DNA from: Ylistrum balloti
Taxonomy: Eukaryota
Assembly: GCF_031769215.1 (NCBI RefSeq)
Contig: NW_026781981.1
Span: 124,001 to 188,000 of the forward strand
Direction: 5' to 3'
DNA length: 64,000 nt
Of the stretch, positions 2,290-64,000 are shown one piece after another. Every line of letters begins with the position of its first letter. Positions within the stretch are counted from its first letter, which is position 1. Under the pieces are notes generated by a model, which worked only from the letters and a program-made list of their open reading frames with translations, was not told the origin of the DNA and ran no database searches. The position numbers were made by a program, and so were the translations under genes.

Positions 2290-2640
2290 ACATAGCTAGC
2301 TGATGATTTTATCTTTGCCTTGTGATAACCATGGAAGGACAACCAGTCACAGCTAGCTAGACAAGTGCATCTTTTCCCTTGTTAGGTTTATGGAAATACA
2401 GCCAACCATAACTCTCTTGACAAGTGCATCTTTTCCCTTTATAAATCTGTGGAAGCACAGCCAACCACAGCTAGCTAGATATGTACATCTTTCTATTGTC
2501 TATGCAGGACAGTTGTGTCATCCATTGCAAGGTCGATGAGTACATATTTTCCTCGTAAAATCTATGGTGGGACATTCTCACTGCACAGCAGAGCTGAAAG
2601 AGTACACTTTCTACCATGGTAAATCTACTGCTGGTACTAT
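2290..2640. repeat. Old degenerate tandem repeat, ~59-bp period, ~6 units, just 3' of the AKNA stop
   Basis: gacaagtgcatcttttccctt at 2360 and 2419; diverged homologues at ~2301, 2478, 2535 and 2596. Confidence 0.7.
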
Positions 2641-2712
2641 ACTTTATGGTGTGTACTGATCACATCTTCTTCTTTAGTTCTATGAAGATCACTTTCATCA
2701 ACAGTACAACTT

Positions 2713-2850
2713 TCACCACACAGAGGAGCCAAAGTCTTTGTGTTTCTTGGCTCTCTTTAGTTCGCCACGAACTGTACACATCATCTTGGTTGTGAGGTCA
2801 TCAATTTCTTCCGTCAAATTGAGTGACTGGTTCAGAGCGTCCTCATACTC
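2713..2850 (-). CDS. AKNA: AKNA last coding exon: EYEDALNQSLNLTEEIDDLTTKMMCTVRGELKRAKKHKDFGSSVW*
   Basis: ggttgcag acceptor (phase 0), TGA at 2715-2713; resembles the AKNA C-terminal helix. Confidence 0.85.
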   Translation of the reverse strand, partial: EYEDALNQSLNLTEEIDDLTTKMMCTVRGELKRAKKHKDFGSSVW

Positions 2851-8800: not shown

Positions 8801-11800
8801 CATATATCTATAAGATTCTATCTGCCTTCTTTATTGTAAAATGTGCTGATGAATCACTAATTCTTAACTCACTAACTGTTTAAATATTTTGTTAAGAGAT
8901 TATCTGACAATTCTTTATCTCTGAAATGGACATAAGAGAAACTTATGAAACAAGAGATTCTATATTCTAGACCAGAATACACCTAGTATTGTATCATAAA
9001 GATTATATCAACAGTCTTTTGCCTTTAAAGCAAAATATTCATATAGCAGAAATGTTCTTTACATTTGTAGTCAAATTTTTCCAAGAAACCTGAATTAACT
9101 CAAATCTAAAAGTACAAACCATTTATCACAAACCAGACAATACATTATTTTCTATACAATCCATATATATAATTTTATATATAACGAAGCTGTCAAGGCT
9201 TGATCATGTCATGTTTGGTTGTACTTTCTTGATTAAGGGTTTCTTCCCAGGCTAAATCTGTAACCATCTTGTATTTATGTATAATCATACTCTACACAAA
9301 AATTCAATATATTGTCCAATAAAACAAATTGTTTTTGTACAGCGACAAATTCAGCTTTCTACAGAGAACAAAATTGTGCTAAATTTTTAATATTATCATG
9401 TCTGACTTTAGAAAACAGGTTCCACAGCATTTTAAAAAAATGTAGTGACAAGGAACTTTTAAACTTCAAATGAAATAAATAGTGCTGCATCAACGATTAT
9501 GTTAAATAGCTATGCTTTAGTATTATCATTTCATGAAGAAATATTTTTCATTTGAAATAACTGAAAACTCTACAGAAACAGAAGTTTGAAAATCTGGCAC
9601 TATGCATACTAAAGATAGTACCTATATACACAAAGCTGAACAAAAATAAAACTTTTCATGAAAATTTCTTATAATAATGAAAAAAGGTCAATCTGCTCAT
9701 CTAGAATCAACAAAAAGAAATGTTCAACCTCAGCAATACAGTTAACGTACAATGTAATAATGTCGCAAGATATGACAAGTAAAGATATACATGTATTACA
9801 TATATACAGGGGTTGGGGGGAGGGGTAAAGTTTTCAGCAGTACAGCTATCATACATTGTAATAATGTCGTAAAATATGAAAATATGACAAGTAAAGATAT
9901 ATACATACATATATTACATATATACAGGGGTTGGGGGGAGGGGTTAAGTTTTCAGCAGTACAGTATAACGTATGACTTAGGGGGTATAGATATGTTTGTT
10001 ACACTGTAATGTGACTGAGAGGTATACAGACATTTTTATATACTGTAATGTGATTGAGGGGTATACAGACATTTTTGATATACTGTAATGTGACTGAGGG
10101 GTATACAGTCATTTTTGATATACTGTAATGTGACTGAGGGGTATACAGTCATTTTTGATATACTGTAATGTGACTGAGGGGTATACAGACATTTTTGATA
10201 TACTGTAATGTGACTGAGGGGTATACAGACATTTTTGATATACTGTAATGTGACTGAGGGGTATACAGTCATTTTTGATATACTGTAATGTGACTGAGGG
10301 GTATACAGACATTTTTGATAACAGCTGACTGATGGACTGAAGAACAGTCATACTGACTGACTTACAGAAAAGGTGCCTATCGTTCAGTGATAACAATAAA
10401 TTTTCATTGCTGAAATTTTTGCAATAAGATTAGACTTAATCTTATTTTTTGGCTGTTTGTCTTTTTTTATCATAATTTTATATAGATTTTGTTTTGTTTT
10501 TGTTTGTTTTTTGTCTTTTTATTTCCAAATGACAATATTTGTAATCCACTGAAGATCCAAAATTGCGGTATTTAATGTATTTTTGTCTTCCATTCTCAGG
10601 TAACTTAGATATTTACTTTTTAGAACTTGTAAGAAGTAAACTGCTTTCTACTGATGTTTTTGTGGCAGGGACAAAAAACATCAAAAGGAGAAGTTACTAA
10701 TACAGATCAGAATTTTGACAGAAAATGATACTTAAGTATGACAACTCATTATAAATGCTGGCAACTATGTAAATTATAAACAAAACTGAGGAGGTTCAAA
10801 ATCCAAAACTGTAAACAAAGCAACACAGGGGCAGTTATGATGAAGCCTATCAACACAATACTATACACACAACATATATATATGATGGGTATATATCTAA
10901 CCCCTCATGTCAGCTAGCCAACGTAAATTAACCGTGGCGTTCTCCTCCGATCTTAGTGTTTCTCCACCTGTGAAGAAATATTAAGCAGACATATGGATGG
11001 CTTCTTCTATCAATTATATTTCTTAAAGGAAAAAAAGACAAACAAGTGATGCTCTGTCATTCCAAGATGGATTCCAAAAAAATTGGCATTAACAGGTAAC
11101 AGAGAATATGTTGAGAGAGTGGAACAAGAAAAAGGGCAATAACTCTAGTTTATATCAGAGTAGGAAACCTCTATGACCAGTAACTAATTTTTATAATGGT
11201 ATAGATGTACCTAATGCAACTTAATAAATTGACAGACATACTGAGTTCAGTGACAAACTTTACAATGATAAAGATATCCCTTATACATTGACAGACATAC
11301 TGAGCCCAGTGACAAACTTTACAATGATAAAGATCTCCCTTATACATTGACAGACATACTGAGCCCAGTGACAAACTTTACAATGATAAAGATTTCCCTA
11401 TACAAGTTGATACATTGACAGACATACCGAGTATAAAGCTAAGTCAGCCGACTGTGTAGGCATCACTTGACGACTTCACAACCATGATAATCATTAATAT
11501 GGAGGATGTCTTGTTATGTTTTACTACCAGTAGCAAATGTATTAAAACTGATCTGAGTTGCCCACCTGTAACTGTATTACTAAACTTACTATAACTTATC
11601 ACAGCTAACCAGCTATGTCACCAAATAAACAATTTTCTCTCACCTCAACTTAGTAAAGAGACTCTAACCAAGTATATCATATAGTGAAGACGAGCGCTGC
11701 CATACAGCTTTATGATCTATAGTTACATACACTATCATTGTACAAGTATAACCTGACAAACTCTCACCTTCCTCTTCCTCCTGTATAGAGGCTTCTACCA

Positions 11801-14800
11801 TACTGCGAGGTCGTTGTCGACTACGACGAGAGTGGTGAGAGGAGTCAAAACTCACATCACTTTCTGTCAGGGTGTAACTATCATCGGTGAAGTCCCTACT
11901 CATATCTGTGGTCATGTCACGTCGACTCCCTGACCTCAGTGACCCTCGAGATGAGGGTCGATCATCATGCCTTGTTCTCCCAGACCTAGCTGACCTTGAA
12001 CTTGCAATGGAAGCTGTCTCTACGTCACGTGATCTGGACCTAGGTCTGTAAATAATAAATATATAAACGATGATACCTTAGGTTTCAGCGGAACAGGTAG
12101 AGCCTAGCCTTTCAAGTTGTTAGATTTCTGAGACAGGCAGTATACCCCTGCTTTAACCAACTTAGTGACTTAACAACAGTGTGTTGTTCATAATTGCCAT
12201 GTAATTACAATAATTATACACAAATGTATTACAATCATTTTAACTTAAAAAAATTCACATATGTAGAAGACAGTAAATCTTTATAGATGTGTAATAGGAC
12301 ATTCTAATCTAATTAGGATTTTAAATCAGAATCTCTTCACAAATAAAGGGGAGACAATAATCAGTAGAAAATTATATGATTATCACATCTTAAAATTATA
12401 ATTAAAGTATAAAAAGGTGTTATTAACATAGGAATTTAACATTAAAGAAATGATATAATCAGTAAAATCTATGATACGTGAATCTATGAAGTCCCACCTT
12501 TCTTCATTATCTGCTGGATGTCGTAACCGTAATGAGGGTTGAGCTTGGTCTTGATGCTGCAGTTGCTGTTGCCGTGACGACATCTGACTGACCTCTGACC
12601 CTACCATTGAACCTATAAACCCACTGTCTGCATCAGGAGCATTTCTCTGTTTTGTCATTTGTTTGAACTTTCCTGGCCCTGGAAGGCTGGAGAGATTGCC
12701 CGCTGTGGCCCCGCCTCCGTTAGTGTTGTCGTGTTCAGATATACCACTGTCACCAAGACTACTGAGGCTACCTCCATCTTGTCTCTACAGGAGATAAGAC
12801 CATCAAGACTTCACTACAAAATCACAATTAATTACACCAGAAAAATATTTCCAAATCATTTAAAACAGAAGAACAAAAAATTACTATACGATGTATACAA
12901 GCAAAAGCTCTAGGCATCTTTGAGATGTACACCCCTGTATGCAACTCTTTCAGTAAAAAATTCAAGATTTCTCAAAAAAGTTTTACATTTATAGATTTCT
13001 CATTTAATTAAAGATGTAAACCCAGATCTGTTAGGAATGGCTTGTGCGGTATCTCAGTAGGATACATGTCTAACCAGATCTGTTAGGAACAGCTTGTGAG
13101 GTATCTCAGTAGGATACATGTCTAACCAGACAGATCTGTTAGGAACAGCTTGTGAGGTATCTCAGTAGGATACATGTCTAACCAGATCTGTTAGGAACAG
13201 CTTGTGAGGTATCTCAGTAGGATACATGTCTAACCAGATCTGTTAGGAACGACTTGTGAGTACCTCAAAAGGATACATTTTTAATTTTTTTAATTTTTAC
13301 ATGCTCAGAGGAAAAGTAGTGAGGACCAAATACCACCATCACAAGTGCAAGAGACATTAAATCTTAATCAAATCTATCAGATGTTTTACAGGACTAAAGG
13401 GACTTTTTATAACCTATCAAATTAACCTTGACAAATAACTTTCAACATCCAAGTGAGTCTAACTAACATTTTTCCTGACATGTGTAGGACAAACAACAGA
13501 CACGACATTGTATGTGTTGCTGTTAAATATTAAGTAAGTGATAAAAGATGGAGGTTGTGAAGAAAACAAAAATCTATAACAAGCAACAAACCTGCCACTG
13601 CCATCTTTTCATGAACTAAAAACATATGATATGGATCATGTTTTCAGTACTGCATACGACAAGCTTAAAATTTTGTGATGAAATGTGTAATGATAATTTT
13701 ATCTTAAATATTAAGTGAATAGTTTTGTTAAGTTATCTAGAGTTCCTTCTGGAGGAAATTGTATTTAGATAACAATTAAGTTTTTGTTGTCACTTTTAGA
13801 ATTCAAATATTTACAAATAAATCTTTTGTGGAACTAGCTGTCAAAATTAGCAGCTTTGCAGTTTTCAGTGTTTAGGGATAATTCACCTTCTTGAGTCCAT
13901 GTTTCCTGTCGGGGTGGTCATGCCTTCGAGGTCGAGGGAGCCTGGGGTTGGGGGAGTTCCTGTCTGGATCTCTAGGAGTCCCTCGTGAGGATAGGCTGCT
14001 TCGACTGCTGCTGACGCTGCTAGACTGGCGTAAACTGTTGTCCTGGGGTAGGCCACGAGGTGTGTCTGGGGAGGGATTACACATATCAATAGACACACAG
14101 TCATAACTATTGCTCTCAACTTATTATTAGACATTAAGTAAAAACTTACTTGTGTTTCTTTGAAGACTTAAACAAATCAAAGTAAACATGGTACTTACCT
14201 CCATTATACTCTGAGTACGACCTGTCCATCGACCAGTTGTGGGAATTGGTTGGTGTGTCTCTTCCCTAGCGACAGAAAATCTTCAGTATAAGAACCATTG
14301 TAATACACATTCCCCAGAAAAAAAGTTAAAGCCAGATATATTTCCATCACCATAAAGAATAATAACTCAGAGATACAAAACAGCTAGCTACAAACATTTT
14401 GTGATGAAATGTGTGATAATTTTATCTTAAATATTAAGTGAATATGTTATCTGTCCTTCAATTGTATTAGATAACAATTAAGCTTTTGTGTCACTTTTAG
14501 AATTCAAATATTTACAAATAAATCTTTTGTGGAACTAGCTGTCAAAATTATCCTACATTTGTAAGGAATTAATTAGATATTTTACCGGCTGATAATAAAA
14601 GACATAAATATTAATCTAAATCTGATAACATCTGACTTTCTACTGTCTGAATACCTACCCTGGTAAATGATCTGATCTCATACCTAACCTGGTAAATGAT
14701 CTGATCTCATACCTACCCTGATCACATACCTACCCAGATAAATGATCTGATCTCATACCTACCCTGGTAAATGATCTGATCTCATACCTAACCTGGTAAA

Positions 14801-17800
14801 TGATCTGATCTCATACCTACCCTGGTAAATGATCTGATCTCATACCTACCCAGATAAATGATCTGATCTCATACCTACCCTGGTAAATGATCACATACCT
14901 ACCCAGATAAATCACCATAAAGAATAATAACTCAGAGATACAAAACAGCTAGCTACAAACATGTGACCTGTGTAAACCCTACAATATGATGTCCATCAAT
15001 ACATACCAGTGTACCCAGATAAATGATCTGATCACATACCTACATTTGTAAGGAATTAATTAGATATTTTACCCTGATAATAAAAGACATAAATATTAAT
15101 CTAAACATCTGACTTTCATACCTCTGATCTGATCTGAATACCTACCCTGGTAAATGATCTGATCTCATACCTATCCTGGTTTAAATGATCTGATCTAAGT
15201 AACACCTACCCTGGAAAATGATTGGTTCTGGACACTAGCCATCTGTTCACGTTGTTGCACCTGTTGACTTGGGCGTCGCCCCATGACAGGGGAGGCAACT
15301 GACATTCGCCTTCCATCCTCATCTCGCTCCTGCAGTTGTTCCCACCTGTTGTTAGAGTTCACAGTTAGTGTTAAATGTGTTTGTATATAAAGCTATGTCA
15401 TCTCCTAAGATATATACACAATATTGTAAATTCTGGAGAGAACTGAATCAACTTGGAAGATCATTTATTCATCACTAAAAATGTCTTAACTAGAAATTGA
15501 TATAATTATGCCACAATTTCACAGATTCAATTAGAATATCATCATAATTATCATGTACAATATATCAGTAACATACAGCAGTTCCTGTATACATGTATAT
15601 CAAAACATATTTAGTACTTCTCTGAAAAATTATGTGACCATTGATATCTGTTTTCAAAAGAGTCCAACTTTATTACCATAGTAAACTTTTGTATTTTTAA
15701 TTTCAAATCTCCCTAAAAACAAAACCATTCAATTCATTAACTTTCGCAACATTTAACTATAAAGTGTTGATGCAACATTAACACTGGCTCATCAGATATG
15801 AATCAGAAGTATGGAGCTTTTTAGTATAATTGGCTTTTTAAGAAGAAATTTTTAGACTATCAGGTTTTGGACATCTACAATTAATTGATAGCCAATTTGG
15901 TACTAACAATACCAAAACACATCAAATGTCAGCTTAACACCCTCAATGAGCAGTGAGAAGATGAACAAAATCTTATCATTTCTTGAATTTTGAAAGTTAA
16001 ATTAAGGGTCATAAAATATGTTAACTGTAACCAAAAATGAATGTGACCAGCAAAACATGATACAGCTACATAATATATACCAAACTTCAGTTCAATGTCT
16101 CAATTTGTCAAAGAGTAAATTAACAGAAACCAAAATAATGATAAAATGATGGGATAATGACCCTTGCCATTTTATTGCAAGGATATAATGATATGGAATA
16201 TTGATCAGAACAATTAGTTATACTGACATCTGATAACAAACCTGTCGCATAAAATATTTCTTAGTTCACCCTAGAAATGTCACGATATCTATGATAGGAG
16301 AGCTACTCTTACAGAACTGTAACCTATCACTCTAAACTCTACAGAAAGATATCATTCAGTCAGAGACTGGATATGCAGTACAGGCCTGATCACCAGCATC
16401 ATTGTAACTATTGGTGATCGGATTCTATCAGAAATAGCTTATACAAATGCTGAAAATTCTTCACATAGTACATGAAAAAGGTATATACTACTCATTATTT
16501 CAATCTTTCTTATTTCTTTTTTTTTTTTTTTGGGATGGACACACATTTGGAAAAGAAAAAATATTGTTTTGATGTGTGCTTCAACAAGAACATAGACACT
16601 CACAAGAGGCCCAATGGACCTGTATTGCTCACCTTGACAATTCAATAAATGACTTTTTGAACAGCATTATTAGAAATACTTCTCCATATAAGGTCCTGTT
16701 TATCAGTTGCAGAAAAAAAGCTTCATTTCGTTATATGATATTCCCAAGTCCCAAGGATAACTCGAACACTTAACCATTCTTCCTGTATTTTGCAAACCCT
16801 CTCTCTTTTGAAATGGTTCCCTTCTACCTAACTTTGCTCCTTACTATTTTTAAAGACATTTTGAAAGAAGGGCACAAAATTGATGGATGGATTGACGATG
16901 GATATCATGCCACAGATGGTGAGCAGAAAAATAATTTCTAGCAAATACTCATGTGCAGAACAACAGAGTGACAATATCACAACAGGAAATGTGAAGGGTT
17001 CCAAATGCTTGATACTTAATTAATTCTCTGTCTACATATTATTTTCACTTTTTTAATTGAGTCCTACATTTCACAAATTATAATAAGAAATTTGCATAAA
17101 ACTTTTCTGAATATCTAGTTATAATTTTACTGTTTAATATTAACTTAAACATGCAAAAATAGTGCAATTACTTAGGAAAATTTTTAAAATAACAAAAGCT
17201 AATGATAGAGAGGGTGTAAAAGACTAAAGAAATTGGACTAATGCGAACAGATCAGGAATCTATACTAAAAGGTAATAGACACATTAAAACAGCTTACTTC
17301 TTCCTTCTGTATGAACTTGTGGGGTGAAATCAAATAAAACATTAAACATCATGTTCATCACACTAAACTAAACATTATTTTAATACAAAAGAAAAATGAA
17401 TTCCAACCTGTATTAAATTAACATTCTTTTTCAGTCCAATCTGATAAGCACTTCACTTATCCAATTCATAAGTATTTGATAACAAGTCTTAGAAAACTGA
17501 GTATACTTTTGGAATATCTGAATGTGTGTATCAATATCAATCCAACCTATTGTTAAATATTAATTCCTAGATGCAAGGTAAATTTGTGAGAAAATCAAGG
17601 AACAGTGTGAATGGGGATGATATGAGTATTAAGGTGTGTCATTATATATAACCTCTCCAGGATCCAACTTTCACTTGGTATGATTTTTTTCTACCACCAA
17701 TTGTTTTCCATAGCTATGTAACCTCCCTTTCAAGCTGGTGACTAGAAAGTGAGGCTGCATAGCTATCAATCTGCTGTCACAAGACAAAACAATAACCGTG

Positions 17801-20800
17801 CATCAGGAAGGGGAGACAACCAGCAAGGGGAGACAACCAGTACTGTGCAAACCAGTGATACATTGGACAATGATTTACCTGGCCGGTTCATCGTCTAAAT
17901 CACTACCTGTTTGGCTAACATCAGAGGCAAACGAGATTTCTAGGCCTTGACTGCAATTACGGGAAATCAATAGTACAAATTTCCCGTGTTATTACCGTAA
18001 CAGTCTGGCTATAATTAATATTGATTACTAGTTATGTTTTTTATTATGTCGTTGTTTCTGGTCCTTTTCATTCTGTCCTCATTTCTGACAATTACCGTGG
18101 GACCTTCGACACAATATTATCTTTTGTTTTACAAAGCAATCTATCATAAAATGTACTGAAAGAAAGATAAAAATACCTGGGTAATAACTGCTGACAAATG
18201 AGTAATACGATACCTGTATGTATATCTACAGGTAAAAACAATCCAGGATATCCTATAGGAGACCAATACAATGTAATGATATCATGAAACTTAATACTAA
18301 TCATTAATAACATTTCTGAATCAATTAAATAACAGTTAAATTACCTTTCTTGCAATTCTTTAGGCATCTTGAATATTTCTGGCTCTGAATTACAGATGTG
18401 TTTCAGTTTCTGGAGAATGAAAGAAAAACATTAATAATTGTAGAATTAACAGAAGATAAATGTACGAATATTGTGCTTAATGTGATAAAATACAATCTGA
18501 CATGTACGATAGCAATACTGATTTTCATATCATGTGACAAGTATAAGCTTGCAATTTTTTGACATCATTCTCAAATCTCCATTCTCAAATCTCAACCAAT
18601 TCTCAGACAATGTTTTTTGTACTTTATAATTCATCACTTTGTACAAATATATTTTATACATGTTTTTCAGAAAACATTTAAGATTCTACAACAAGAAAAT
18701 AAAAGCATGTGCTGGAGACAGAGAATCTTATGTTAAGGGTGTGTATGTGCCTTAAGGATGGTGGGTTTTCTAGTGGAGGACAAGGGGTGGGCAGGGCCAT
18801 TAAATACAGACTCTCAGTTCAGAAAGTTTTTCTTCAGTAAGATGTAGTCAATAGTTCACAGGAATTTAAAAATCATCAACACAAAAAACAAAAAAAAACA
18901 ATACAGTAAGTCTATCAAAAATGTGAAGCAAACAGGGATTTAATTCACACAAAGGTCTGATAAACCGATACTTAACACAGTATCATTTGTTGTTTGTTTA
19001 TAACTATAGGTAAAGTGTGGGAAAACAGTAAACATTGAAGCTGTCTCATAGTGTTAGCTCGGTCTGGTACTATACACTATTGTCTTCAATTAAAGTTGTA
19101 GAACATCATTTATTTGTTTGTTTGAATTAAAGTTTACCTTAACAGATCTGTTGTTTATTTGTTTGTGGTAATTAATGCCAATAGATAAACATCTGTACCA
19201 GTAGTAAAAGAATGATCAGTGTAGGTTATGGTCTGTTAAAGATCCAGAACTTGTCTAAAATCTTCTGCCTTCTATTATAAATACATCTAAAACATGTTCC
19301 TAGCCATTTTGTTAACAACCCTGTGTATCTGAACAGTTTGATTCCATATTTTTCTTTATACCTGTACCCTTTTATACCCCTACCCTAACCATATCTAAAT
19401 TGTAAATATGATGTTGTTTATAAACATCAATTTGTCAGAACAAATAGAAATTAGTGAAATTACATCAAACTCTGTATCTCACTAGTGTTTTTTTCTCTTT
19501 ATTAATAAGAATATTATAAAACTTCTCCTATATAGCACAACAAACTGTCCCACGAGACCATTTCTCTGTATGAAACTCTCCCTGACAAGAAGCTAGACAG
19601 GACATTTGACATTTGTTGTCATTTTGATTTAACTTATTGATTTGGGTTGTCTTTATCTTGGCATTAGACTTAACAAGTGACATTCTAGGAGAAGTGGTAT
19701 CCTAAGGTTTAAAATTCTATATTCCTGGCGGTGTAAAATAATCGGTCAGCAAAACTCAAAAAGGTTTCCATTCTCCAGTCACGTTTAATATCCAATGTAG
19801 AACAGCTGATCCTGTCTACCCCCCATTACCTATCATTGTAGAACAGCTGACCCTGTCTAACCCTATACCTATCATTGTAGAACAGCTGACCCTGTCTACC
19901 CCCATTACCTATCATTGTAGAACAGCTGACCCTGTCTACCCTCCCCCACCCTATATCTATAACTGTAGAACAGCTGACCCTGTCTACCCTCCCCCACCCT
20001 ATATCTATAACTGTAGAACAGCTGACCCTGTCTACCCTCCCCCACCCTATATCTATAACTGTAGAACAGCTGACCCTGTCTACCCTCTCCCACCCTATAT
20101 CTATAACTGTAGAACAGCTGACCCTGTCTAACCCTCCCCCACCCTATATCTATAACTGTAGAACAGCTGTCTACCCTCCCCCACCCTGTCTGACCCTGTC
20201 TACCCCCCCCCCCCCCACCCTATATCTATAACTGTAGAAACTGAACAGCTGACCCTGTCAGCTCCCCCACCCCCTGTAGAACCCTGACCCCCACCCTATA
20301 TCTATATCTGACTGTAGAACAGCTGACCAGGTCTACCCCTATATCTGTCTACCCCTATATCTATTACTGTAGAACAGCTGACCATGTCTACCCCTATATC
20401 TATCATTGTAGAACAGCTGACCCCTGTCTACCCCTATATCTATTACTGTAGAACAGCTGACCCCTGTCTACCCCTATATCTATAACTGTAGAACAGCTGA
20501 CCCCTTTCTACCCCTATATCTATCATTGTAGAACAGCTGACCCCTGTCTTCCCCTATATCTATCTTATGTACTTCACCATAACCAGATGGGTATAAAACT
20601 GTGTACATGTTGTGAACTTATAGACCTATAATCTATAAAGCTTATCATTGTAAATCGTCTTAGCACAGTGGTCCTCCATTAAAATTATATGTAAACACTT
20701 ACACATTAAATGTTTGAAAAAATGCCAAGACCATTGTAAGTTACCTTCACCGTCTAAACTCTAAAACTGCTATGCTATAGTAAAAAGTTCGAGCTAAATG

Positions 20801-23800
20801 GCATTCTGTGCTTTGTGATGTGATTCTGTTCAATGAATAAATACCTAACACACAGTAATAGCGTTTCAGCAAGGCCATGCGGTCACAAAAATTGTTGACA
20901 TATGCCAAGACTCAGTGTAATAACAACAGGTAATGCAAATCTGAACTCATGATGAATGGCATCAAACTTGGACTCTATCAAACATAACTGATGAAGGAAA
21001 ACCATTTTTAAGTCGTGCCTTCTCTGGGCCATGTACTCATGATCTACTGCACTAAATCAGGACATTTGTATTACAATTCACAAAGGCAAAACCCTTTTTA
21101 GACTAGTGCTCTGTCCAGGCCATGATCCCAGGATCTACAAATGGACTAGCCAAGAAATAGTACTACTACCTAACCATTACATCACCATAAATTTCTGAAA
21201 AAATGTTTGGATATCATAGTAATGTGACTAAAGACAAGAAATTCTTGACATGATCATTAAGTGGCAAACTGTAGATTTATTGTAACACTGGATGTAGTGC
21301 AAATGGTCAAGAATTAATTGCTTCATTTTAAAATTGAAAAAAGACAAGAAAATTGACAGGCACAAGAGGAGAAAAAATTTTCACGTAGAGGGGGATAACT
21401 CAGAACCATTCCTTTCAAAGGATTTAATGAAATGTGAAAGCCTAAAGGACACAATGTATTATGCCAAGTTTGAAAGAAACATTCTATTACTTTATACTTG
21501 ACCTGACTATACTAGAAACTGGCAGTTAGACTGGGTTTACTAATACATATATATACACCTGTAGTTGGATGAGAGCCAGATTAAGATTTTTTGACAGCTC
21601 AACATCACTGTTTATCCTAACTGTTTTCTGTCATGTCAGCACTACCCCACTACATATGTCACCCAAACATATCAGGGACCTGGATCCCATGATCTCGTGT
21701 CATTAGGTTCTATGAGACAAAAGTTTATTTGGTTGAAGGATTTCATGTTCGGTCAAAATCAATATCTGTTTTTTATTCTTTAACTTCCACCAATCCTTAG
21801 CTACCTATATGGGGGCATGTTACCTGTTGTTCACCTGTCATCAGAGACAGGTGTTCATTACCACTGGTGAATCAGGTGCCCCTATTTTTAAATTTACAGT
21901 TTTTTATGCTTTGTTCTGGTATCCGTAAAATTTCAAATCCTTAAAACTTTGCCCTATTTCTTAAGTCAGGCCATCAAATTCCTGTCCAGTACTTAGCAAG
22001 GTGGGAGGCCTACCTTTAATTAATGATAGGTGTATAATGATATACATAAGTACCTTTACTACAGGTAAACCATATCCTTTATATCAGTTTATAATCATAA
22101 ATAACAACTTTAAAGAAAAAAATAACTGCATTACATTTGGCCTAAAAAGGAAATAAAATAAAAATTACTAAAGATAATAAACTAAAAAGAGAAAAAAAAA
22201 GAATGGATTCCCACGTTCTCATGTATGTAAGAATCATTGTTTCATGAACTTGCCAAAATTGTCATATATAACCTTTGACCTTTAACCTTGCCTGATGAAC
22301 TTGATACTACAGGGTAAGTATGAAATGAACCAAATCAGTTGAAAGGTTATCAAGATATTATAGTTTTTTTTCAGAAGAGTAGTGACGGGCAAGATGGGAA
22401 GGAACCGGACAAACAAACACACTATATATGTAGCCCATTCCACCCCACTCCTGACACCTCCCCCTTCCCCCCCCCCCCCCCACCCACCCACCCAAATAAA
22501 ACTATGGAGACAGACCAGTCATATTCTTATTCACTGGAAACACACTGTCAGGGTTTTACAACTAAATACTACAGGATCGTTAAAACACAGAGGTCCTACC
22601 GTTTAAATATCAATTAGTAAATAATTTACTTACCTTGACTAAATTATCAATTTCCTTGTCTCGTTCGGGTGTTTGTGCCATCTGTTTCAGTCGACGGTAC
22701 CTATCCATCAAGTTGTTATACTCCACATGCAGGCGATTGACGGAGTCCTGAAACTCTTGTTCCTTGTGAGGCTTGACTAGATCATCACCAGCCATGGCAC
22801 TGGTGATTTTCTTTTTAGTGTGATCTATGGCACGACCTTCGACATCACTACTATCCAATGAAACATCACCGTTTGCTTGTGTACGATTACTCTGGAATGG
22901 CTGTCGTTCTGAAGATTTCTTTTGTCTATTCTCGTCCACTTTTTCATGAATTTCATCAAATTTCATTCCCAATCGAAATAATTCTCCTTCCAGTTCCTTT
23001 TCTTGATCAAAATTCACGTCTCCAACATTGGCATTGGCACGTTTTAACACATTGTAATCCTCTTTTGATTGAAGATAGTCCCTGCGCAATTTTTCATGGT
23101 CTGTCCGAATTTTTTCAAACACTTTTTCCTGTTCATCATGTGTCAATTGCTGTTCATCCAACAAAGTTTTGAAGGATTCCATCTGACAATGAAATGAAGG
23201 AAAACATTGTAAAATCTACAATTCTCTTTTACTTTCTTTAGTCTGATTCATCATAAGTCAGACTGGCTCATGGCACAATTACTGATCTACAGTTAATCTT
23301 ATATAAAATTGTACAAGTAGCCAGATATATTAAAAATAAAGACGACTGACCTGGAGGCTGACCTGTGAAAGGTCTTTGATTATCCCAGTATCTAGAAATA
23401 CTAGAAATGGAGATGACTGACCTTGAGACTGACCTCTGTACATCGATTGATCCTTAAGGAAGGTGAACATTTTCATGTTTTCCAGTTTTCCTCCCAAAAA
23501 TAATATTTTGTTTTTATCATCTTACTAACTGGCAGAATTGTTAAAGATTTTAGATTATCAACACTATAATATCATAATACATTAACAAACACAAGTGTAA
23601 ATGTCCAAACCAAAACCTAATATACCTGATCTGTTCTTTACATTTCTCTGTATCTGCTTAAATGACATTTATATAAAATATCAATTCACAAGCACGACAA
23701 CATAGTTCAATGTGTATATTTACAGACTTAACCTTATGAACAGTGTCAACTTCTATCAATGTGATGCCCACATCTTCTGATATCAAAATGAGAATATATT

Positions 23801-51967: not shown

Positions 51968-51999
51968 CAACATCTCACAAACACCTTGGCGTATTTCTT

Positions 52000-53215
52000 T
52001 CTAATAATGGGAGTTAGAATATTCACATTAACTATTTACAAAGGTTTCGCCAAAATTAAATATTTTTTCCGGAAATTTAAGTTTAGTGTAGACCGCTCTT
52101 GCCCTCAAACCTTATATTTCTCTCTAATTCGGTCATTATTAGAATACGGAAACATTATCTGGGACAATCTCACCCAAGCACAATTCGATCTTCTGGAAAA
52201 TATTCAGTTAGAATTTGCACGCATTGTCACTGATGCAACAAGACTAACAAGTAGATCCAAACTCTATGCGGAAACTGGCTGGCTTCCACTTAATCCAATT
52301 TCACAAAATGGTTCATGGACTTATACACCCCAATACCTCCAAGATCTGCTTCCTGCATGTAACAATTTGACACACAGTCATAAAACTCGCACAGTCAATA
52401 ACTTCCGCTCTATCTCCTGTCATACAAGCTTTTATAAAAAGTCTTTCTTGTCTTCTGTAAATTGTTCATGGAATATGCCGCCAAATCGTATAAAATGTGA
52501 TCCATCAATAAGAAAACTTAAAAAACATGTAAACGAGCCTAGCATTAGAGTGCCGCCTTTATTATACTGGTAGTAGATTGGGTCAGATTCTCCACGCCAG
52601 ACTACGAATGGAATGCAGTTCCCTCAAATTCTACTTGTTTAAAAAAAAGCCGCTAAGAGTCCACTATGTCTATGCAATGAAGGACACGAAACAAATTAAC
52701 ATTTTTTATTGTATTGTCGTCACTCGGACCAACTGCGCGTAGGTACGGTGAATTAACTTGCCAGATTTCAACGGACTTACTACTCTTTGGTAGCGAGGAA
52801 CTGTCTGTAGATGACAACAAAATTACACCATAAGCTCCAAGAGATTTGAATGGTGCTTTTTTACTTTTGATTTGAATTTTGTAGTATTGCAATTAGACTT
52901 TTCACATTATCGCAGCAAATGCAGTTTATGTCTGTGTGCATTGGTTTTCTGAAATCTTATTCTTTTGACATGACGGAAACTCCTCTCCCTCCTCCTCAAC
53001 CTACCCTATCCCTTTCTTTTTCAATTCTCCTCGTTCCTAATTAGCATAATAGCTGAGTCTAGACTGTTTACTCCTTGCCTCGTCAAAATTAAGGAGCTAA
53101 TATCTTAAAGCGGATTAATATAAGTGTTTGAACACTTGTTTCCGTATCAAATTAAATTGATTTGTTTTGATGGCTACTGTACACTGTTTATATAATGATT
53201 GAATTGAATAAAGTT
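52000..53215 (+). mobile_element. 5'-truncated, degenerate non-LTR retrotransposon (CR1/L2-type LINE), post-RT C-terminus plus 3' UTR
   Basis: LYFSLIRSLLEYGNIIWD...LENIQLEFARIVTDATRLTS...LYAETGW, then via frameshifts YYTGSRLGQILHARLRMECSSL and SPLCLC..ET.*HFLLYC...LLLFGS. gaataaa tail near 53205; the 3' boundary is approximate. Confidence 0.8.
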
Positions 53216-55049: not shown

Positions 55050-55095
55050 ATGGGGTTTGAAACATGTGGTCCGAACGAAGTGATGGTTGTTTCGG
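55050..55095 (+). CDS. FLOT1: FLOT1 coding exon 1 (46 nt, phase 1)
   Basis: aaaATGG start, TCGG|gtaagt donor; [15 protein letters not shown]. Confidence 0.95.
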
Positions 55096-58000
55096 GTAAG
55101 TACAATATATTTCTTAATTACATTTCTTTTAAAATTGGGTTGCATCTACGATCTCGGTCAAATTCTAGTTCCGAGTCGTAACATCTTAGTCCGGAAGATT
55201 GATCCTAAAAATTATCATAAATATGATAATATCTATCATATTTCCAAGCTTTCGTTTGTTCTATAATTCTGTTCGATGTTTAAGAAAGCTTAGTGTTATG
55301 ATAATGTTAGTATTGATAAAAGCTTATTACATTAAAATGCATTGGTTCTGCGGAAATATGACTACATCTCCGACCTCCGGCCGGATCGTTTGCAATTCCT
55401 GTACAAATGGCTGCAGCTGACCCCTTGGGACTGGGTAGCGTTCGCACGAAATGGGCACACATATTATCGAGTGCACAGACAAATGCACGCTCGTATCCCA
55501 CGGACAATAGTTGCGAAACGAACTTTAACATTGTAGACGATCAAAGATGAAACGGTCGCCCGCCGTGAATGAGAAACATAATCACTCATGCGTGAGATAA
55601 ATTGTTTGGGAGTTGGCTTCGGCCATGCCTAACATTCCTAGTATACATCTCTTCACATATGTGCTGAAATCTTTAAGAAAGTGGGCATTTCTGACTTTAG
55701 AAGAGATTACGTTAAGATCCTTCTGGTACATAGTGCAGATGTCGCCATATATATTTGATTAGAACTGGTGCACTTATCCTTTCAATCACTGGGCAGTTTG
55801 CTTTAAGGCTATGTGGAGTGATGTTTTTGTTTCTCAGTGGAGATCATGTTACATTGTACTACAATAAAGGCCTATATCAGAAACATTCCAGCATAAAAGC
55901 TGACAGTGAACAAATGAAGATCTACATGTAAGATTCCATTTCAGTGATAGACTCCTAGAATGATGGACGGATATCTCTGCCATGTTATGGATTAAGATTA
56001 AGCTGATGATGTTGCAATTACTGTAGATTAAGATTTTACAATATAGTGGTAGTAAATATCCAAACCTCAAATTCAATTTTTATCTATTTCGCAGTTAAGT
56101 TATGTTCCTTTTTATCTTTGTTTCCGCATAACTTTAAGTAACACAGATAACACTCACATGTTGATTTTTTCATTTCGTTGTTTGATTTAGATTTTGGAAA
56201 AAAAAATCTGATGTTTATATTGTTTTAATGATTATACAATTACTTAATAAAGGTTTAATGACCTTGGACCATGAACATATTAGGTGGTTAAGTTATTTAA
56301 GGCCATATAGATGGTTCACTGTTATAATATGACTTGTTGTTTTTCACAGGATGCTGCCATTCCAGGTCCCTGTTTATCCCTGGTGGGCGTGTCTTTGTAT
56401 GGCCTGTTATACAACACTTACAAAGGTCAGTGTCACATCCTGCACCTGCCTCTTTTGTTATTATATATATATAGAATATAGGGTATATTCTGTAATATAT
56501 TGAATTTCGGTAATTTATTGAATCACTCTTACAAATGCTCAATAGGATTCCTAAACTCATTATGAACATTTTGTAATGAAAAAGGTGGATATAAATAAGT
56601 ATATGAATCTTGCATGAAATTACCAGTAAGGATTAAATTGAGCGATGAAGATTGATATTTGTAGACTACACAGATTGCAAGCATTATTTCCTTTGAATTA
56701 TCAGATGATATGACTGATCATGACAAAATGAGTGTAAAATGACAGTGTATTTGTATAATGTTACACTACTGTATAGAATAGTAATAACAGCAGGGGTAGA
56801 AATTATGTCTAGGATAAAATGTTTTCTGATTCTAATTATAGTCAATAATTGATTTAACAGCGAGTGACATTCTGGCAAATTCCATGAAATGTGCCAGAAC
56901 AGCATCTTGCTGTTATTTTGACCTTAATATAAAACATAAAATATTTCATCAAAATAAAATTACAAACAACATTTGAGGTAATAACTTATGTTGGTTACAG
57001 AGTAAATTCAGTAACAGTGTAAACATAGATGGCCAAAAGCAGTATTGTGACATCACATTACTATGGAACCTGTTACATTATTAGAATGTTTTTCTAGTTC
57101 TGTTGTCACAGAATAGCAAATGTTAAAAAACCTGTTAGAATGTGTCAACCACTTAACTATAATTTTTAGTCATTTTTGCTTATTAACATCCTTATGTTGA
57201 ATACAAGAGTAAAAAAATGATAGAAAACAATGTTGTTTTTTAACATGAATTTACGTGTAATATGTATAAGTGCATTTTGTTTTATTGAATAATGTAAAAC
57301 CTGACATATTGTGGCAAAGATATTTGATTTATGGTGTTAATACTTTATGTAGTATAAGTTGATATAGTTTCCAAGAATTGGGTTATTAAGATCAGATAGA
57401 CTCTGTAGAATTTATTCATTACATATTTCTAGTCTTGTTATACACAATATGAGTAAACATGTAAATGGATAGGTAGATAAGAACATTTTTTTTTCAATTT
57501 TTAATAATTTTCAAATATTTTGCGATCATTTTATAGAGCTTTGCTTTGTTTTCTAAATTACTAGAAGTCATGAACATTTATCTTTAATAACAATTTTACA
57601 TTTCGAAATTCCATTTGACTTTATTATGTGAGATTTTGATAAAATGAGTCAATTATGCTTGAATACAGGATGTTTATAATTGATGTTTTTCTGTCTCCTG
57701 AAATTGCTTAGAATGGCCCTGTGTACCTTGACCCTGGCAATAGAGAGCCCCATGGTATACACCAAAGAAGGTGTGGCCATATCAGTCACTGGTATTGCAC
57801 AAGTAAGTGCAGTTAGCAGTTGTCTGCCCTTGGTTATCATCCCATTGTTAGACACTTGCTTACCTTTAGCATGAGTAGCAGCATATACAGCAGGGGTGTA
57901 AAAATCATGTCAAAATGAAATCCAGATTATATTATTAGACAGCCAGCTGGTGGCTATAGCTGGCAGATTTCATGTTTGGCCTTGTAAATATGAAGCCACT

Positions 58001-61000
58001 AGCGGTTTTGTATTATCATATAGAGTAATATTCATATTCAGCTGCCAACAAGATGACAAATCTATTTACACCTCTTCAGCTCCATAAATATTGTGTCAGT
58101 GTTTTATTTTTACAGTCTTATTTGAATTTGTTCCTTTATTTTAATTATAACTGATGTTTAGTTGTGTGGCAGTTTGATAATTTTGAACAGGTTTGGTGGT
58201 GTTTTTTTTTTTTCATTAATGAAAGAAATCTTATAATAAATCATATACCTGGAGATCAGTCCATTAGCCTTTTCAGTAAAAAACGCCACAACTCCTACTC
58301 AACATCAGCTTTTTGTTTCAGTTGCTGCATATATATCTTTTGTTTTGTGATTTCGGCAGTATTTGTTTTGATGTATATGGCTAAGTGTTGAGGGTTTATT
58401 TCAGACTGACCTTAAACACCATGGATATCCAGGTAGATAGTTCCAATGTATACACACAGCTCGGTGTAGCTATTTCTGTGACAGGAATCGCACAGGTAAG
58501 CCAGCTCTAGTTTAATTAATGAACTGCTATATTTACTCTCGAACGAGAAATCTAGAAATTTCATCAGTGCTCTCTTTTCAATTTTGCTTTCTCTTTTCTC
58601 TAGAAACTGAGATGTCCCATCTGTAATTAGATTTGAAACGGTATATGTTAGGGTATTTGAAATAAATTAGGTGAATTTAAAATAAAAAATACTTTTAAAA
58701 ATACCCCTTTTAACAACTTTAAACCACAAACATTCATCTGCTTCCTTTGAAGTTACATTAAAAAGTACACAGTAGTTATCAATAAAACGGTATTGATACA
58801 GTAATTTGAAACAAATTTGTTGTTGTGTCTGAAATGCAGTCAGTGATATCGGTATTGCTGCTGTGTCCATATTGCTGCAAATTCAGCAGTTAGATATAAT
58901 GGAGTTATATGTTATAGAAATTTGATAGATTGTGTTGGATTGGTATCCACTGAAACATTCATCTCTATGTACACCATACATAAACAAATACCAAGGGAAC
59001 AGACCGTAGCCTAGAAACCACTACTGATAGTAAACCTGTGTAACTACTATTACTGTACGTTGTCTGACCTCTATAAAAGATCCTTACTGCTTGAATTACA
59101 AATAAACTAACACATAAACTACACAGTGTATCCCTTCATTGCTATCTGAATTGGCCCCAATAATACATAGTAGGTATAGACAGCTCAATGCATGTTTTTG
59201 GTTTTTAGCATTTCTATTTTTTACGTTGGTACCATTTCAGTTGACCTTTCTTTCTAGTTCTATATTAAGACTCTAAGGCATGTTATATATAAACCCTAGT
59301 TATGGCTGCCAGCATGTATATGTGTCCATATAATCTACACTAACGATTGCAAATCTCACCAAGAAAAAATTATATAGGTCTATATTATTACAGAACTTTT
59401 ACCCAGTACTAACTAGAGTTGGAGTATTTTGTGTCCTGTAATCACATTTAGAGGCTGTGTAAGTTATGAGACATACATACTAGTTGAAAATGTGTGTGTC
59501 CTGATGTACATTTGTACACACACTCAGTACTTAGACTTACATTAATGTTTATATAACAGATTGTAAAAGGGACTGGAGATTAATCATTTACTATCTTATG
59601 CCCTAGTTGAAGTCTCTGACTGCCTCATAAAGACTTGTATAACTTCCTTTATTGACAAATAGAAAAGCTGAACTAATTTTGTATTGTTTAGGTACTAGTG
59701 TTGATATATGTATGATTATTTCATACAAAAAAAAAAAAAAAAAAGGAAGGAAGGAAGCCAAAGAGATTATTACCATGGATACAGGTTACTGTTAGACGCT
59801 TGATAAGGGGCAGGGTGATATTTGTAAAATGTACACAGAAATCAGTGTTGCTCCAGTAAATGTAGAAGTTCACATTCTGCATGTGCCAAAGGACTGCTGT
59901 CAATACAGTTATGTATATCAATGCCTGTGATGCTTTTTCTATAGAGCCTGCTTAGCTGAGAAATGCTGTCAAATGTAATATTGATCTGTTATTCAGTCAT
60001 TAGGCTGTGTACAGTTTTTGCTATGTATTGCGGTACAAACTCGTTCGATACTCAGAAAGATGAAGCCTGCAATTGTATTCATAGAAAAAGAAGCTATTTT
60101 TTCAATAATAATGATTTGAAATGTTTTTATATCATTAAATAGTAGATGTGTATATTTTAACAGTCATATGTCACTGGAAGTGAGACTTCATTATGGGTAC
60201 CTAAAGAGATACTGTAATGGTGCATCAGGGATGTGATTATCTTCTCTTAAACCAATCATTATCAGAAAGCTTACTGTATGAATCATCTGACAGTGGTTAC
60301 AACTCTTGTTACTAGTTCACTAACTACTGTATTTTGCCTTAAAGTTATGTGGTTGTAGGATCTTCTTGGTTCCTAGTTGTGAGTATTTGCCTTCAAGAAT
60401 GATTAATTAGAAAAAAACAAGAGAGCTATAATAGATGGCTTTTTCATATAAAATGACAGTTTAAGTTACAGGAAGTTATCATTGTCTCTCAGAGAGTGAT
60501 TGAAGGCTCTCTTTCCAAGTGTAATTAGACGAGGGCTACTGAATCTGGATCAGAGAAATACGAGGGCCTACAAAAGGAACTGGTCATCTTGAATTTAGAG
60601 AGTCAAAGTTTAATAATGATACATTGTATTTTATAGAAAGTAAAGGAAGAATCTTTCTCATGTTTCAGATGTAAGTCCAAATGAATATAATGGTCACCAT
60701 TTTTCCATATAAATTTTAGGACTGATTCGAAACCAAGATGGCTGTTTTGTCATTGAAAGGACCATGTTTATCAACACTGTTACCTTTACTCAGTAGTTTA
60801 CAAACGGATTGATTCCAGATTTTATATGCATGTGTTTCTTGGCCTCATCATTTGGCATACTGATGTTATGAATTGATAAAAAGTGGACGAAAGATGGTCT
60901 TCTTTAACTTTTGAGTTTGTTACCAGATAAAATTTGCTATTTCTCAGAAACTAGTTCTATTGGGATCTTAAAATTTCATATATATATGAACTGAGAGTCG

Positions 61001-62655
61001 TTTGTGTTCTATGCTGTTAACGTTTACTACATGTATGTGATTGGAGTCATGACGACATCTAGCAAGAAATTTTGGAACTACTACTGTTTTCGTTCATGAA
61101 AATTTCATTAAGATATCTCACATTTGACTAATCAAAATGCTGTGTGTTAGGACACTGCAGTAGCCAGCTCCGGTCTGGACCAGAGAAATAATCATTATCT
61201 CAAGATTGAAATTGTCAATATGCCCATACTTTTTTAAAAATTATATCTACATTTTTTGATCACAGAAAAAAATGTCTGATAGAATTTTCACCAAGAAAAT
61301 GAAGAGGAGAAAAAGAGCCATTTGCAAAGATCTATTGATTATGGGTATCAAGCTGCTTTAGGTATCTCTCGTATCAGAATCTAATATAAAAGTTGGTAAT
61401 CACATCCCTGAATGTGTATGGGACCAAGTGTAGCAGTAACACAATCTCTTGTATAAATAATAGATGATACGTATTTTGAGTACACACATAAGTATAAAGG
61501 TGTAGAAATGTATTGCATTTTCTAGTCTATGTGTTTTTATTATACATGCTTTCAGGAATATATTTGTTAATGGTGACTCCTAACTTTGTAGGTAAAAATT
61601 CAGGGCTCCAGTAAAGACATGTTGGAGTCTGCCTGCGAACTTTTCTTGGGAAAGCCAGAATCTGAGATCCGTAAGGTGGCTCAGGAAACCCTAGAAGGTC
61701 ACCAGAGAGCTATTATGGGAAATATGACTGTAGAGGTACTTACTCGTCAGCTTGTAAACTATCTAATTGTATCAGGACCTGTATATTGTTAATCACTTTG
61801 ATTTAGTGAATAATTTATTTTGGGAACTTAGCTTTTCAGACATACTTGTGAATACATGATTTTGCGAATGCTGATCTAGAAGTGACTTAAAATTTGTAAT
61901 TGGTGAGCTGCTCGAGCATAGATTCTGTGCTCAAGCAGACTGTTTAATAATTCGCCAAAATCATATAAAATAATACAAATGTCAAATATAAACATTGAAT
62001 ATAACTTTGACTGGAAGTCCTTTCAAACTTTTTTGAAAATTTCATGCTTGAGCATGAGAATGGTTTCATGAATACGGGCCCTGGATTCTGTAAGACTCTG
62101 ATATCATTAACAGAATCAACATTGGTGCCATCCAGAGTTATTTACATACAAACAATAGAGAGAGGTTTTAACTCCTGATTGTTTCTCTTTGTGTATTTCG
62201 TGTACGAAAACAAATCCCTCTTGAAATATCAGTGATTTACAGTATACTTGTCAAATATTCAGCAGGTCTTACCTTAACCTAAGAACAGGGTATATTCAGG
62301 ATCAAAATCCTGCCACTGAGCTTATTGTTTAATATTTGAAATGTTCAAAAAAGATTAAGAAGGAAGAAAGGTGAAAAGGAAAAAAAATAGCAATCATTTA
62401 TATACCTTAGAATCGCAAAATATAAAAGGTTTATTTTGAAATTTTATCAGTGTATAAATAGACATTTACCTTTTTACCAGTATGTATTGTTCTTGGTTTT
62501 GGATCAAATTGCCACTATTTGCTTTTGGTAAATAGGAAATCTACAAGGACCGTAAGAAGTTCTCCAAAGCTGTGTTCGAGGTAGCTTCCTCTGACCTGGT
62601 CAACATGGGAATCTGTGTCGTGAGTTACACACTAAAGGACATTCGTGACGATGAG
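55050..62655 (+). CDS. FLOT1: Flotillin-1 (SPFH/band-7 domain), 5' partial: exons 55050-55095, 56350-56425, 57712-57802 or 58405-58495, 61592-61735, 62536-62655; continues beyond window
   Basis: Spliced translation [41 protein letters not shown]-[exon 3][88 protein letters not shown]. Closely matches flotillin-1 rather than flotillin-2; canonical splice sites. Confidence 0.95.
56350..56425 (+). CDS. FLOT1: FLOT1 exon 2 (76 nt, phase 1-2)
   Basis: ttttcacag acceptor, AAG|gtcagt donor; GGRVFVWP motif. Confidence 0.95.
57712..57802 (+). CDS. FLOT1: FLOT1 exon 3A (91 nt, phase 2-0): [31 protein letters not shown]
   Basis: ttgcttag acceptor, CAA|gtaagt donor. Confidence 0.9.
58405..58495 (+). 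CDS. FLOT1: FLOT1 exon 3B (91 nt, phase 2-0): [31 protein letters not shown]
   Basis: tttatttcag acceptor, CAG|gtaagc donor; paralogous to 3A; missed by the ORF track. Confidence 0.9.
61592..61735 (+). CDS. FLOT1: FLOT1 exon 4 (144 nt, phase 0-0)
   Basis: ctaactttgtag acceptor, GAG|gtactt donor; [12 protein letters not shown] motif. Confidence 0.95.
62536..62655 (+). CDS. FLOT1: FLOT1 exon 5 (120 nt, phase 0-0)
   Basis: aaatag acceptor, GAG|gtaaat donor; [10 protein letters not shown]...DLVNMGI...SYTLKDI. Confidence 0.95.
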
Positions 62656-62729: not shown

Positions 62730-63465
62730 TGGTGTCATCACAGGACAGTCTGGATGTCCTGGGTGTCATCACAGGACAGTCAAGATTTCCGGGGTGTAAC
62801 CACAGGCCAGTCTGGATGTCCGGGGTGTCATCACAAGACAGTCTGGATGTCCTGGGTGTCATCACAGGACAGTCTGGATGTCCTGGGTGTCATCACAGGG
62901 CAGTCAAGATGTCCTGGGTGTCATCACAGAACAGTCTGGATGTCCTGGGTGTCATCACAGGGCAGTCAAGATGTCCTGCTGGGTGTCATCACAGGACAGT
63001 CAAGATGTCCTGGGTGTCATCACAGGGCAGAAAAGATGTCCTGCTGGGTGTCATCACAGGACAGTCTGGATGTCCTGGGTGTCATCACAGGGCAGTCAAG
63101 ATGTCCTGCTGGGTGTCATCACAGGACAGTCTGGATGTCCTGGGTGTCATCACAGGGCAGTCAAGATGTCCTGCTGGGTGTCATCACAGGACAGTCAAGA
63201 TGTCCTGGGTGTTATCACAGGACAGTCCTGATGTCCTGGGTGTCATCACAGGGCAGTCAAGATGTCCTGGGTGTCATCACAGGACAGTCAAGATGTCCTG
63301 GGTGTCATCACAGGACAGTCTGGATGTCCTGGGTGTCATCACAGGACAGTCTGGATGTCCTGGGTGTCATCACAGGACAGTCTGGATGTCCTGGGTGTCA
63401 TCACAGGACAGTCAAGATGTCCTGGGTGTCATCACAGGACAGTCAAGATGGCCTGGGTGTCATCT
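62730..63465. repeat. Minisatellite, 31/34-bp unit, ~23 copies, in FLOT1 intron 5
   Basis: gatgtcctg(ctg)ggtgtcatcacagg(a/g)cagtc(tg/aa). Confidence 0.95.
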
Positions 63466-64000
63466 CAGTAGAGATCTGACTGTTTTTTTAGCTATGACTG
63501 ATATATGAAAGTCAGATAATTTACATGGCCAAGGAATTCAAAATATGAATTTTTTTCTGTTTTTGGCATAGAAAAACTGTGAATTTTAAATGTCATATGC
63601 TTTATAAAAAATATGCATAGAACTGTCACAATATCAAACCCTCAAGAACAGATGGAAATACATAGTTAAAATTTGAATACACTATATGTTCAGATTCAAT
63701 CTTAATAAAAAAGGAGCTGAAGGTCTTTAAAGATATTGTGACAGATCTAAGGCTGAGGCAATTTCACAACTCACTGCTCCTATATATTGTCAAAAATTAT
63801 ATCGAACAAGGATTCATACTGCATGTACACTGCCTTACTTTAGGAAATACTAAATGTGACATAGTCAACAAGCTATTGTGGTTGTTTTATTCATAACTTC
63901 ATGATATTTCAGATAAAGCTGACAGCATTTCCAAACATTCACAATTCTCTTATTGGACTGATCATGTATTGATCTTAAAAGATGTTTGATATGATCGACA

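Follow-up and report, generated by a model that had tools for sequence, protein, structure and literature searches.

A probably ancient tandem pair of third exons, probable alternatives to each other, in flotillin-1 of the scallop Ylistrum balloti and other molluscs

The window analyzed here, 64,000 nt of the Ylistrum balloti genome (RefSeq assembly GCF_031769215.1, contig NW_026781981.1, positions 124,001 to 188,000, forward strand), contains a flotillin-1 gene with two versions of exon 3, referred to below as 3A and 3B. We consider it quite probable that they arose by tandem exon duplication a very long time ago and that they serve as mutually exclusive alternatives. The window covers residues 1–159 of flotillin-1 only, encoded by the first five coding exons on the + strand at 55050–62655 (Table 1). 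The gene is assigned to flotillin-1 (SPFH/Band 7 family, FLOT1 orthologue) by sequence comparison, as its exon 4 is closer to FLOT1 than to FLOT2: in the PDB search, residues 71–118 of human FLOT1 (9bq2_B) match the exon 4 peptide at E 8e-16, and FLOT2 matches it at 1e-8. Over its 159 residues, the 3B splice form does not differ from the Y. balloti “flotillin-1-like isoform X1” of RefSeq (P0395), and it differs by one residue from the Mizuhopecten yessoensis protein. Domains PF01145 (Band 7) and PF15975 (Flot) are present in the Mizuhopecten isoform X1 (P0364), the representative of the 90% cluster containing P0395.

An original prediction, made from the letters of the window, had described two intact 91-nt exons with canonical splice sites; both are confirmed to the base, and the same holds for the two peptides, the end of exon 2 and the start of exon 4. 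Exon 3A has the acceptor ...ttgcttag/A and the donor CAA/gtaagt, exon 3B, the acceptor ...tttcag/A and the donor CAG/gtaagc; the first base (A) of either exon is the third base of an Arg codon begun in exon 2. The exons are homologous and share both length and phase, as is characteristic of tandem duplications, with 54 of 91 nucleotides and 17 of 30 amino acids (57%) identical. The last 11 codons encode the same residues, and 9 of approximately 9.7 synonymous sites in them differ (proportion of differing synonymous sites, pS, 0.93; of non-synonymous sites, pN, 0). Hence, the copies are old, and the residues common to them have been held by selection. When either exon peptide is compared by tblastn with all 64 kb, only the other exon is found (E ~1e-7; next best 0.3), so the match between them is not due to chance, and neither peptide reveals a third copy of exon 3 in the window.

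The length of 91 nt equals 3n+1, so that inclusion of both exons or of neither breaks the frame and exactly one keeps it, as had been proposed. Indeed, 3A alone or 3B alone yields an open flotillin frame, with 3A and 3B together the frame is closed by a stop 11 codons into 3B, and AGG-TAA arises at the exon 2/4 junction when both are skipped. Since the exons are spaced by 602 nt, steric exclusion in its simple form is ruled out. The sequence requires that each mRNA carry exactly one exon 3; mRNAs with both copies or none would encode truncated products, presumably cleared by nonsense-mediated decay, and the frame, together with this decay, would then enforce single inclusion.

Four genomic loci were used for comparison, those of Mizuhopecten (L001), Pecten maximus (L002), the oyster Magallana gigas (L003) and the limpet Patella caerulea (L004). 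The order of A followed by B is the same in the two other scallops and in the limpet, and all orthologous exon 3 copies examined retain AG/GT sites and an open frame. The 3B peptide is identical among the Mizuhopecten, Pecten and Ylistrum proteins, and 3A of the limpet has 83% protein identity to scallop 3A; introns of the window are strongly diverged from the Mizuhopecten and Pecten introns. Among the three scallops, pS is 0.13–0.31 and pN 0.015–0.044 for 3A (3–7 synonymous vs. 1–3 non-synonymous changes, pN/pS ~0.1–0.17), the respective values being 0.04–0.09 and 0 for 3B, 0.12–0.35 and 0 for constitutive exon 2, and 0.33–0.60 and 0–0.026 for constitutive exons 4 and 5. With pN well below pS for each copy, these values point to purifying selection on both 3A and 3B, as the original prediction had it, and neither exon is decaying in the scallops examined, decay of one copy in relatives being the sign that the prediction had named against itself. 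Moreover, relative to constitutive exons 4 and 5, 3B shows a deficit of synonymous changes (Fisher p = 1.6e-4 and 7e-4), which indicates additional constraint on 3B at the nucleotide level, as is often the case for regulated alternative exons.

The pattern of one copy or the other is seen in annotated isoforms. Mizuhopecten RefSeq isoforms X1 and X3, both of 427 residues, differ only at residues 42–60; X1 uses 3B, and the A-type peptide of X3 is two residues off 3A of the window. The same pattern recurs in dozens of mollusc annotations, among them those of other bivalves (Dreissena, Mya with four versions, Mercenaria, Ruditapes, Sinanodonta, and Mytilus), of gastropods (Patella, Haliotis with five versions, Pomacea, Babylonia, and Littorina), of the cephalopod Octopus and of the chiton Liolophura (three versions), and in RefSeq and GenBank models of many molluscs the A-type exon is spliced alone and in frame. 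Gene models of Plakobranchus and Nucella erroneously read through both exons, making the A-then-B order visible. One transcript-length contig, from a unionid, has a third version of exon 3, which is direct transcript evidence of expressed alternatives in at least one bivalve. The proposed mutual exclusivity is, then, demanded by the frame and agrees with the annotated isoforms of relatives, each having one copy, the demonstration of actual use being indirect.

The two types are easily distinguished. The A-type signature is Met at position 2 and V-Y-T-K at positions 16–19 (“RM...VYTK”), the B-type signature, Leu and V-Y-T-Q-L. In the maximum-likelihood tree of 74 exon 3 versions, all 19 V-Y-T-K versions and one chiton version form a single cluster (Shimodaira–Hasegawa-like approximate likelihood ratio test, SH-aLRT, 87), which spans four mollusc classes, that is, bivalves, gastropods, cephalopods and a chiton. 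The conserved order of the exons in the genes fits the tree, and both point to a single duplication that probably preceded the split of the mollusc classes, with subsequent loss of the A exon in oysters and additional B-type duplications in the abalone, clam and mussel lineages. In Magallana gigas, exon 3 is represented by a B-type copy alone, and the 590-nt intron following exon 2 contains no recognizable 3A remnant; the oyster isoforms retrieved (Magallana, Crassostrea, Ostrea, and Saccostrea) all carry the same version. This looks like a lineage-specific loss. At the other extreme, five versions of exon 3 are found in Haliotis rufescens (isoform proteins P0269–P0294).

Outside molluscs, the nemertean Lineus longissimus has six exon 3 versions (proteins P0459, P0377, P0461, P0458, P0457, and P0460), and the brachiopod Lingula anatina combines three versions of exon 3 with two of exon 2 into six isoforms (P0340, P0371, P0324, P0374, P0379, and P0327). 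In the tree, the Lingula and Lineus versions do not fall within the cluster of A-type exons and seem to be separate expansions. The original prediction had left the choice between a convergent and an ancestral switch; within molluscs it is probably ancestral, and the extra copies of the brachiopod and the nemertean look independent. The mollusc-type exon 3 event is not seen in the flotillin-1 sequences retrieved from vertebrates and insects. In hemichordates, flotillin-1 isoforms X1 and X2 (Ptychodera P0464 and P0463, Glandiceps P0466 and P0372) differ only at positions scattered over residues 19–64, which suggests a duplicated alternative block covering exons 2–3 in deuterostome invertebrates as well. 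The 488-aa model of the firefly Lamprigera yunnana (P0189) ends with a second exon-3-like peptide, far from the first one, hinting at an extra exon 3 copy or a fragment of a neighbouring gene.

Conservation of the introns provides leads on regulation. Approximately 120 nt after 3A and 100–140 nt before 3B can be aligned among scallops, compared to only ~6–20 nt of the introns beside constitutive exons 2 and 4; thus, apart from 26–42 nt upstream of 3A, extended intron conservation is located between 3A and 3B. The block upstream of 3B is pyrimidine/GU-rich, with a likely branch site CUAAG ~21 nt from the acceptor. The 3A donor is covered by a hairpin, and the same fold is observed in Mizuhopecten (z –2.6) and Pecten (z –3.0), with nothing comparable in the equivalent stretch at the 3B donor (z +0.4). 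Folds of the conserved intron blocks themselves are not significant (z –1.3 and –0.5), pairing of the two blocks with each other is no better than in shuffled sequences in the three scallops (z –0.4 to +0.4), and no convincing direct or inverted repeats are present in the 5.5 kb searched. We infer that the choice of the exon is probably set by the conserved intron elements between 3A and 3B, and probably also via constraint on the nucleotides of 3B itself, and that masking of the 3A donor by the hairpin perhaps contributes to it. The hairpin could keep 3A repressed unless opened.

In the protein, the switch would replace residues 41–59, leaving residues 60–70 constant. In the human flotillin cage, the SPFH1 end lies half within the membrane, where F30 and C34 are buried, adjacent SPFH1 domains contact each other via less conserved loops, and V61 and I63 form part of the hydrophobic hinge core that surrounds Y160 and is required for assembly (PMC13000311, PMC11260169). 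The constant half of exon 3 corresponds to the V61/I63 strand, and the variable half (residues 41–59) directly follows the membrane-buried residues. Most likely, the isoforms would differ in their contacts with the membrane and lipids or with neighbouring subunits, and not in the architecture of the cage. The AlphaFold model of the N-terminal 200 residues of the scallop protein had a mean predicted local distance difference test score (pLDDT) of 46 and was discarded.

Several observations weigh against this interpretation of the pair. In Ylistrum (including the isoform identical to the window), Pecten and Argopecten, every isoform retrieved contains 3B, and the differences between isoforms lie elsewhere; the two scallop contigs of transcript length in the protein collection contain 3B as well. 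The evidence for the use of 3A in scallops consists of one Gnomon model (Mizuhopecten X3) and sequence conservation. The only run found for the window, a public one, behaves as genomic DNA, with contigs passing through introns, even depth of ~10 and no splice joints; it is ~0.7% different from the window. The tree is built from 31 columns that include the residues used as labels, and its support is moderate. The 3A donor hairpin is a post hoc observation, and with hardly any sequence variation among the three scallops it comes without covariation support. Finally, residues 41–59 are placed in or near the membrane by extension from neighbouring residues named in the cited papers.

The first group of these observations fits an alternative in which 3A is an unused relic heading for loss in this species, with only 3B functional, and the oyster locus, with its single B-type exon and no recognizable trace of 3A between exons 2 and 4, offers an example of the expected outcome. 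In all three scallops examined, however, the frame and the AG/GT sites of 3A are intact, changes in it are mainly synonymous, and ~120 nt of conserved intron adjoin it. In the DNA-like run, one contig spans 57351–61798 with both exons included, and within the two exons it departs from the window only by a synonymous A>G at 57757, so the only polymorphism seen in 3A is also silent. A relic would not persist in this manner across pectinid genera, and we regard the relic explanation as improbable.

Slightly less probable still is the possibility that 3A acts as a conserved “poison” exon, whose inclusion along with 3B leads to a stop and lowers the flotillin-1 output via nonsense-mediated decay, with no second protein formed. 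Double inclusion does produce the required stop, 3A is missing from most scallop isoform annotations and transcript-length contigs, and location of its donor within a hairpin is what one would expect of a tightly regulated exon. Yet a poison exon needs no particular amino acid sequence, while 3A has low pN/pS and is well conserved as a protein up to the limpet, retains the constant 11-residue half despite saturation of synonymous sites relative to 3B, and is spliced singly and in frame in many mollusc RefSeq and GenBank models. The merging of two haplotypes or two paralogous genes in the assembly, a general possibility that the original prediction had raised as unlikely, and which has gained nothing further in its favour, can now be set aside, given the difference at 37 of 91 bases, the unrelated flanks, the single contig of another data set covering both exons, and the same tandem layout in the genomes of three other species.

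Returning to mutually exclusive use of two functional exons, we suggest that 3B is probably the default or major exon, as it is the sole version in scallop transcript-length contigs and the sole one kept in oysters. 3A would then probably be a regulated minor alternative, restricted to some tissue or stage. The lack of 3A in the annotation of three scallop genomes, including the one matching the window, is probably a gap of the annotation.

The gene has a second tandem mutually exclusive pair, which is located at exon 6 (residues ~159–190), beyond the right end of the window. Its two types are M-A-R-T-A-Q-V and M-K-R-T-S/A-E-V, and the pair explains the X1/X2 differences in Mizuhopecten, Pecten, Ylistrum, Argopecten, Haliotis, Biomphalaria, and Mytilus; in the oyster locus, one copy of exon 6 was detected. 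The region corresponds to the hinge with human Tyr160, a phosphorylation-sensitive residue. A wider reading, which we offer tentatively and consider rather doubtful, is that exon 3 is a recurrent duplication hot spot across phyla (two to five versions in molluscs, three in a brachiopod, six in a nemertean, paired versions in hemichordates) and, together with the exon 6 pair, allows invertebrates to form combinatorial flotillin cages from one gene. In that case, the cages would differ in their membrane-insertion and hinge properties, and vertebrates may do something similar via FLOT2.

Table 1. Positions of flotillin-1 exons, candidate regulatory elements and neighbouring features in the window and in the compared loci (coordinates of each sequence are its own)
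Sequence	Feature	Position	Strand	Remarks
Window	Open reading frame	51986–52573		195 aa; just 5' of the flotillin gene
Window	Exon 1	55050–55095	+	Start codon; ends in phase 1; in-frame splice to exon 2; same as in scallop RefSeq flotillin-1-like proteins
Window	Exon 2	56350–56425	+	76 nt; terminal AG, first two bases of Arg codon; pN 0 vs. L001 and L002
Window	Exon 3A	57712–57802	+	91 nt; A type, residues 41–70: 19 variable, then 11 constant
Window	Hairpin over 3A 5' splice site	57783–57827	+	–16.7 kcal/mol, z –2.9; GU in loop, intron +5 onward in stem
Window	Conserved intron block directly 3' of 3A	57803–57922	+	~85–90% vs. Mizuhopecten and Pecten; contains GCAUG and G-run
Window	Conserved intron block directly 5' of 3B	58266–58404	+	87–89%; alignable from 58301 (Mizuhopecten) or 58266 (Pecten)
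Window	Exon 3B	58405–58495	+	91 nt; B type, residues 41–70: 19 variable, then the same 11 constant
Window	Exon 4	61592–61735	+	144 nt; phase 0-0; constitutive
Window	Exon 5	62536–62655	+	120 nt; constitutive; last flotillin exon within the window
Window	Minisatellite in intron 5	62731–63468		31-nt unit, ~23 copies, 88% matches
Mizuhopecten (L001)	Exon 3A	6653–6743		AG/GT intact
Mizuhopecten (L001)	Exon 3B	7352–7442		AG/GT intact
Mizuhopecten (L001)	Exon 6 pair	18581–18676 and 18814–18909		
Pecten maximus (L002)	Exon 3A	5017–5107		AG/GT intact
Pecten maximus (L002)	Exon 3B	6079–6169		AG/GT intact
Pecten maximus (L002)	Exon 6 pair	16076–16168 and 16306–16410		
Magallana gigas (L003)	Region with the single B-type exon 3	2526–3719		
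Patella caerulea (L004)	A-type exon 3	7700–7789		AG/GT intact
Patella caerulea (L004)	B-type exon 3	9133–9222		AG/GT intact; follows A-type
Patella caerulea (L004)	Exon 6 pair	11885–11983 and 12240–12335		

Some other features of the locus were observed. The minisatellite in intron 5 creates long spurious open reading frames in several frames; repeated tblastn matches of the “CCHSD...” type downstream in the Pecten locus (L002, ~22250–23500) may come from an array related to it. The open reading frame preceding the flotillin gene contains motifs (…LIRSLLEYGNIIWD…LENIQLEFARIV…) in a pattern that we take to resemble the C-terminal part of non-LTR (long terminal repeat) retrotransposon reverse transcriptases, and is probably a transposon fragment. 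At position 56409 in exon 2 the other DNA data set has T for A, changing VWPVIQ to VWPVLQ (Ile36Leu), a possible non-synonymous polymorphism near the position of palmitoylated Cys34 of human flotillin-1.

The structure of flotillin cages has been solved only in 2024–2026, and natural variation of their membrane-inserted end is undiscussed. If, as is probable, the switch has been maintained from a time preceding the divergence of the mollusc classes, residues 41–59, chiefly 41, 54, 58, and 59, would be functionally tunable, and 3A and 3B constitute a natural variant pair for probing this surface with respect to lipid preference, partner contacts and cage curvature. For the evolution of splicing, the pair would present a clean phylum-wide case, with loss in oysters and expansion in abalone and clams.

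The flotillin-1 pair shares the main properties of known tandem mutually exclusive exons: its exons are homologous neighbours with the same length and phase and with their own splice sites, the length is not a multiple of three, so that exactly one exon keeps the frame, and the pair is ancient, with purifying selection and conserved flanking introns. Human tandem duplicated exon substitutions have been catalogued (PMC9741552, PMC8373072); unlike the catalogued pairs, the present event is molluscan, and flotillin-1 was not found among them. We have found no paper or catalogue mentioning a flotillin-1 exon switch, and nothing in the literature on a flotillin exon switch in invertebrates; its only trace so far is in genome annotations, as isoform models left without comment. 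The original prediction had mentioned alternative versions of the equivalent exon in vertebrate FLOT2. A duplicated-exon switch is indeed listed for human FLOT2 (ENST00000394908 vs. ENST00000585169), dated at least to Chordata, supported by proteomics and marked as tissue-specific, in nervous tissue (PMC9741552, Table S2), which bears out the prediction in part, the duplicated FLOT2 exon being a candidate equivalent of exon 3. Being a switch in a different paralogue and a different phylum, it is at most a parallel.

With the docking-site and selector clusters, such as insect Dscam1 and 14-3-3zeta and human ATE1 (bioRxiv 10.1101/2020.06.04.134791), the flotillin-1 pair has in common the conserved introns adjoining variable exons. 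Unlike these clusters, its conserved blocks show no pairing above the shuffled level and are not linked by a long inverted repeat. The only structure found in the pair is the local hairpin over the 3A donor. In this respect the pair may rather resemble MAPT exon 10 with its donor stem-loops. By these comparisons, the flotillin-1 switch seems to be a genuine protein-diversifying splice switch of an ordinary kind, previously undescribed for this gene.

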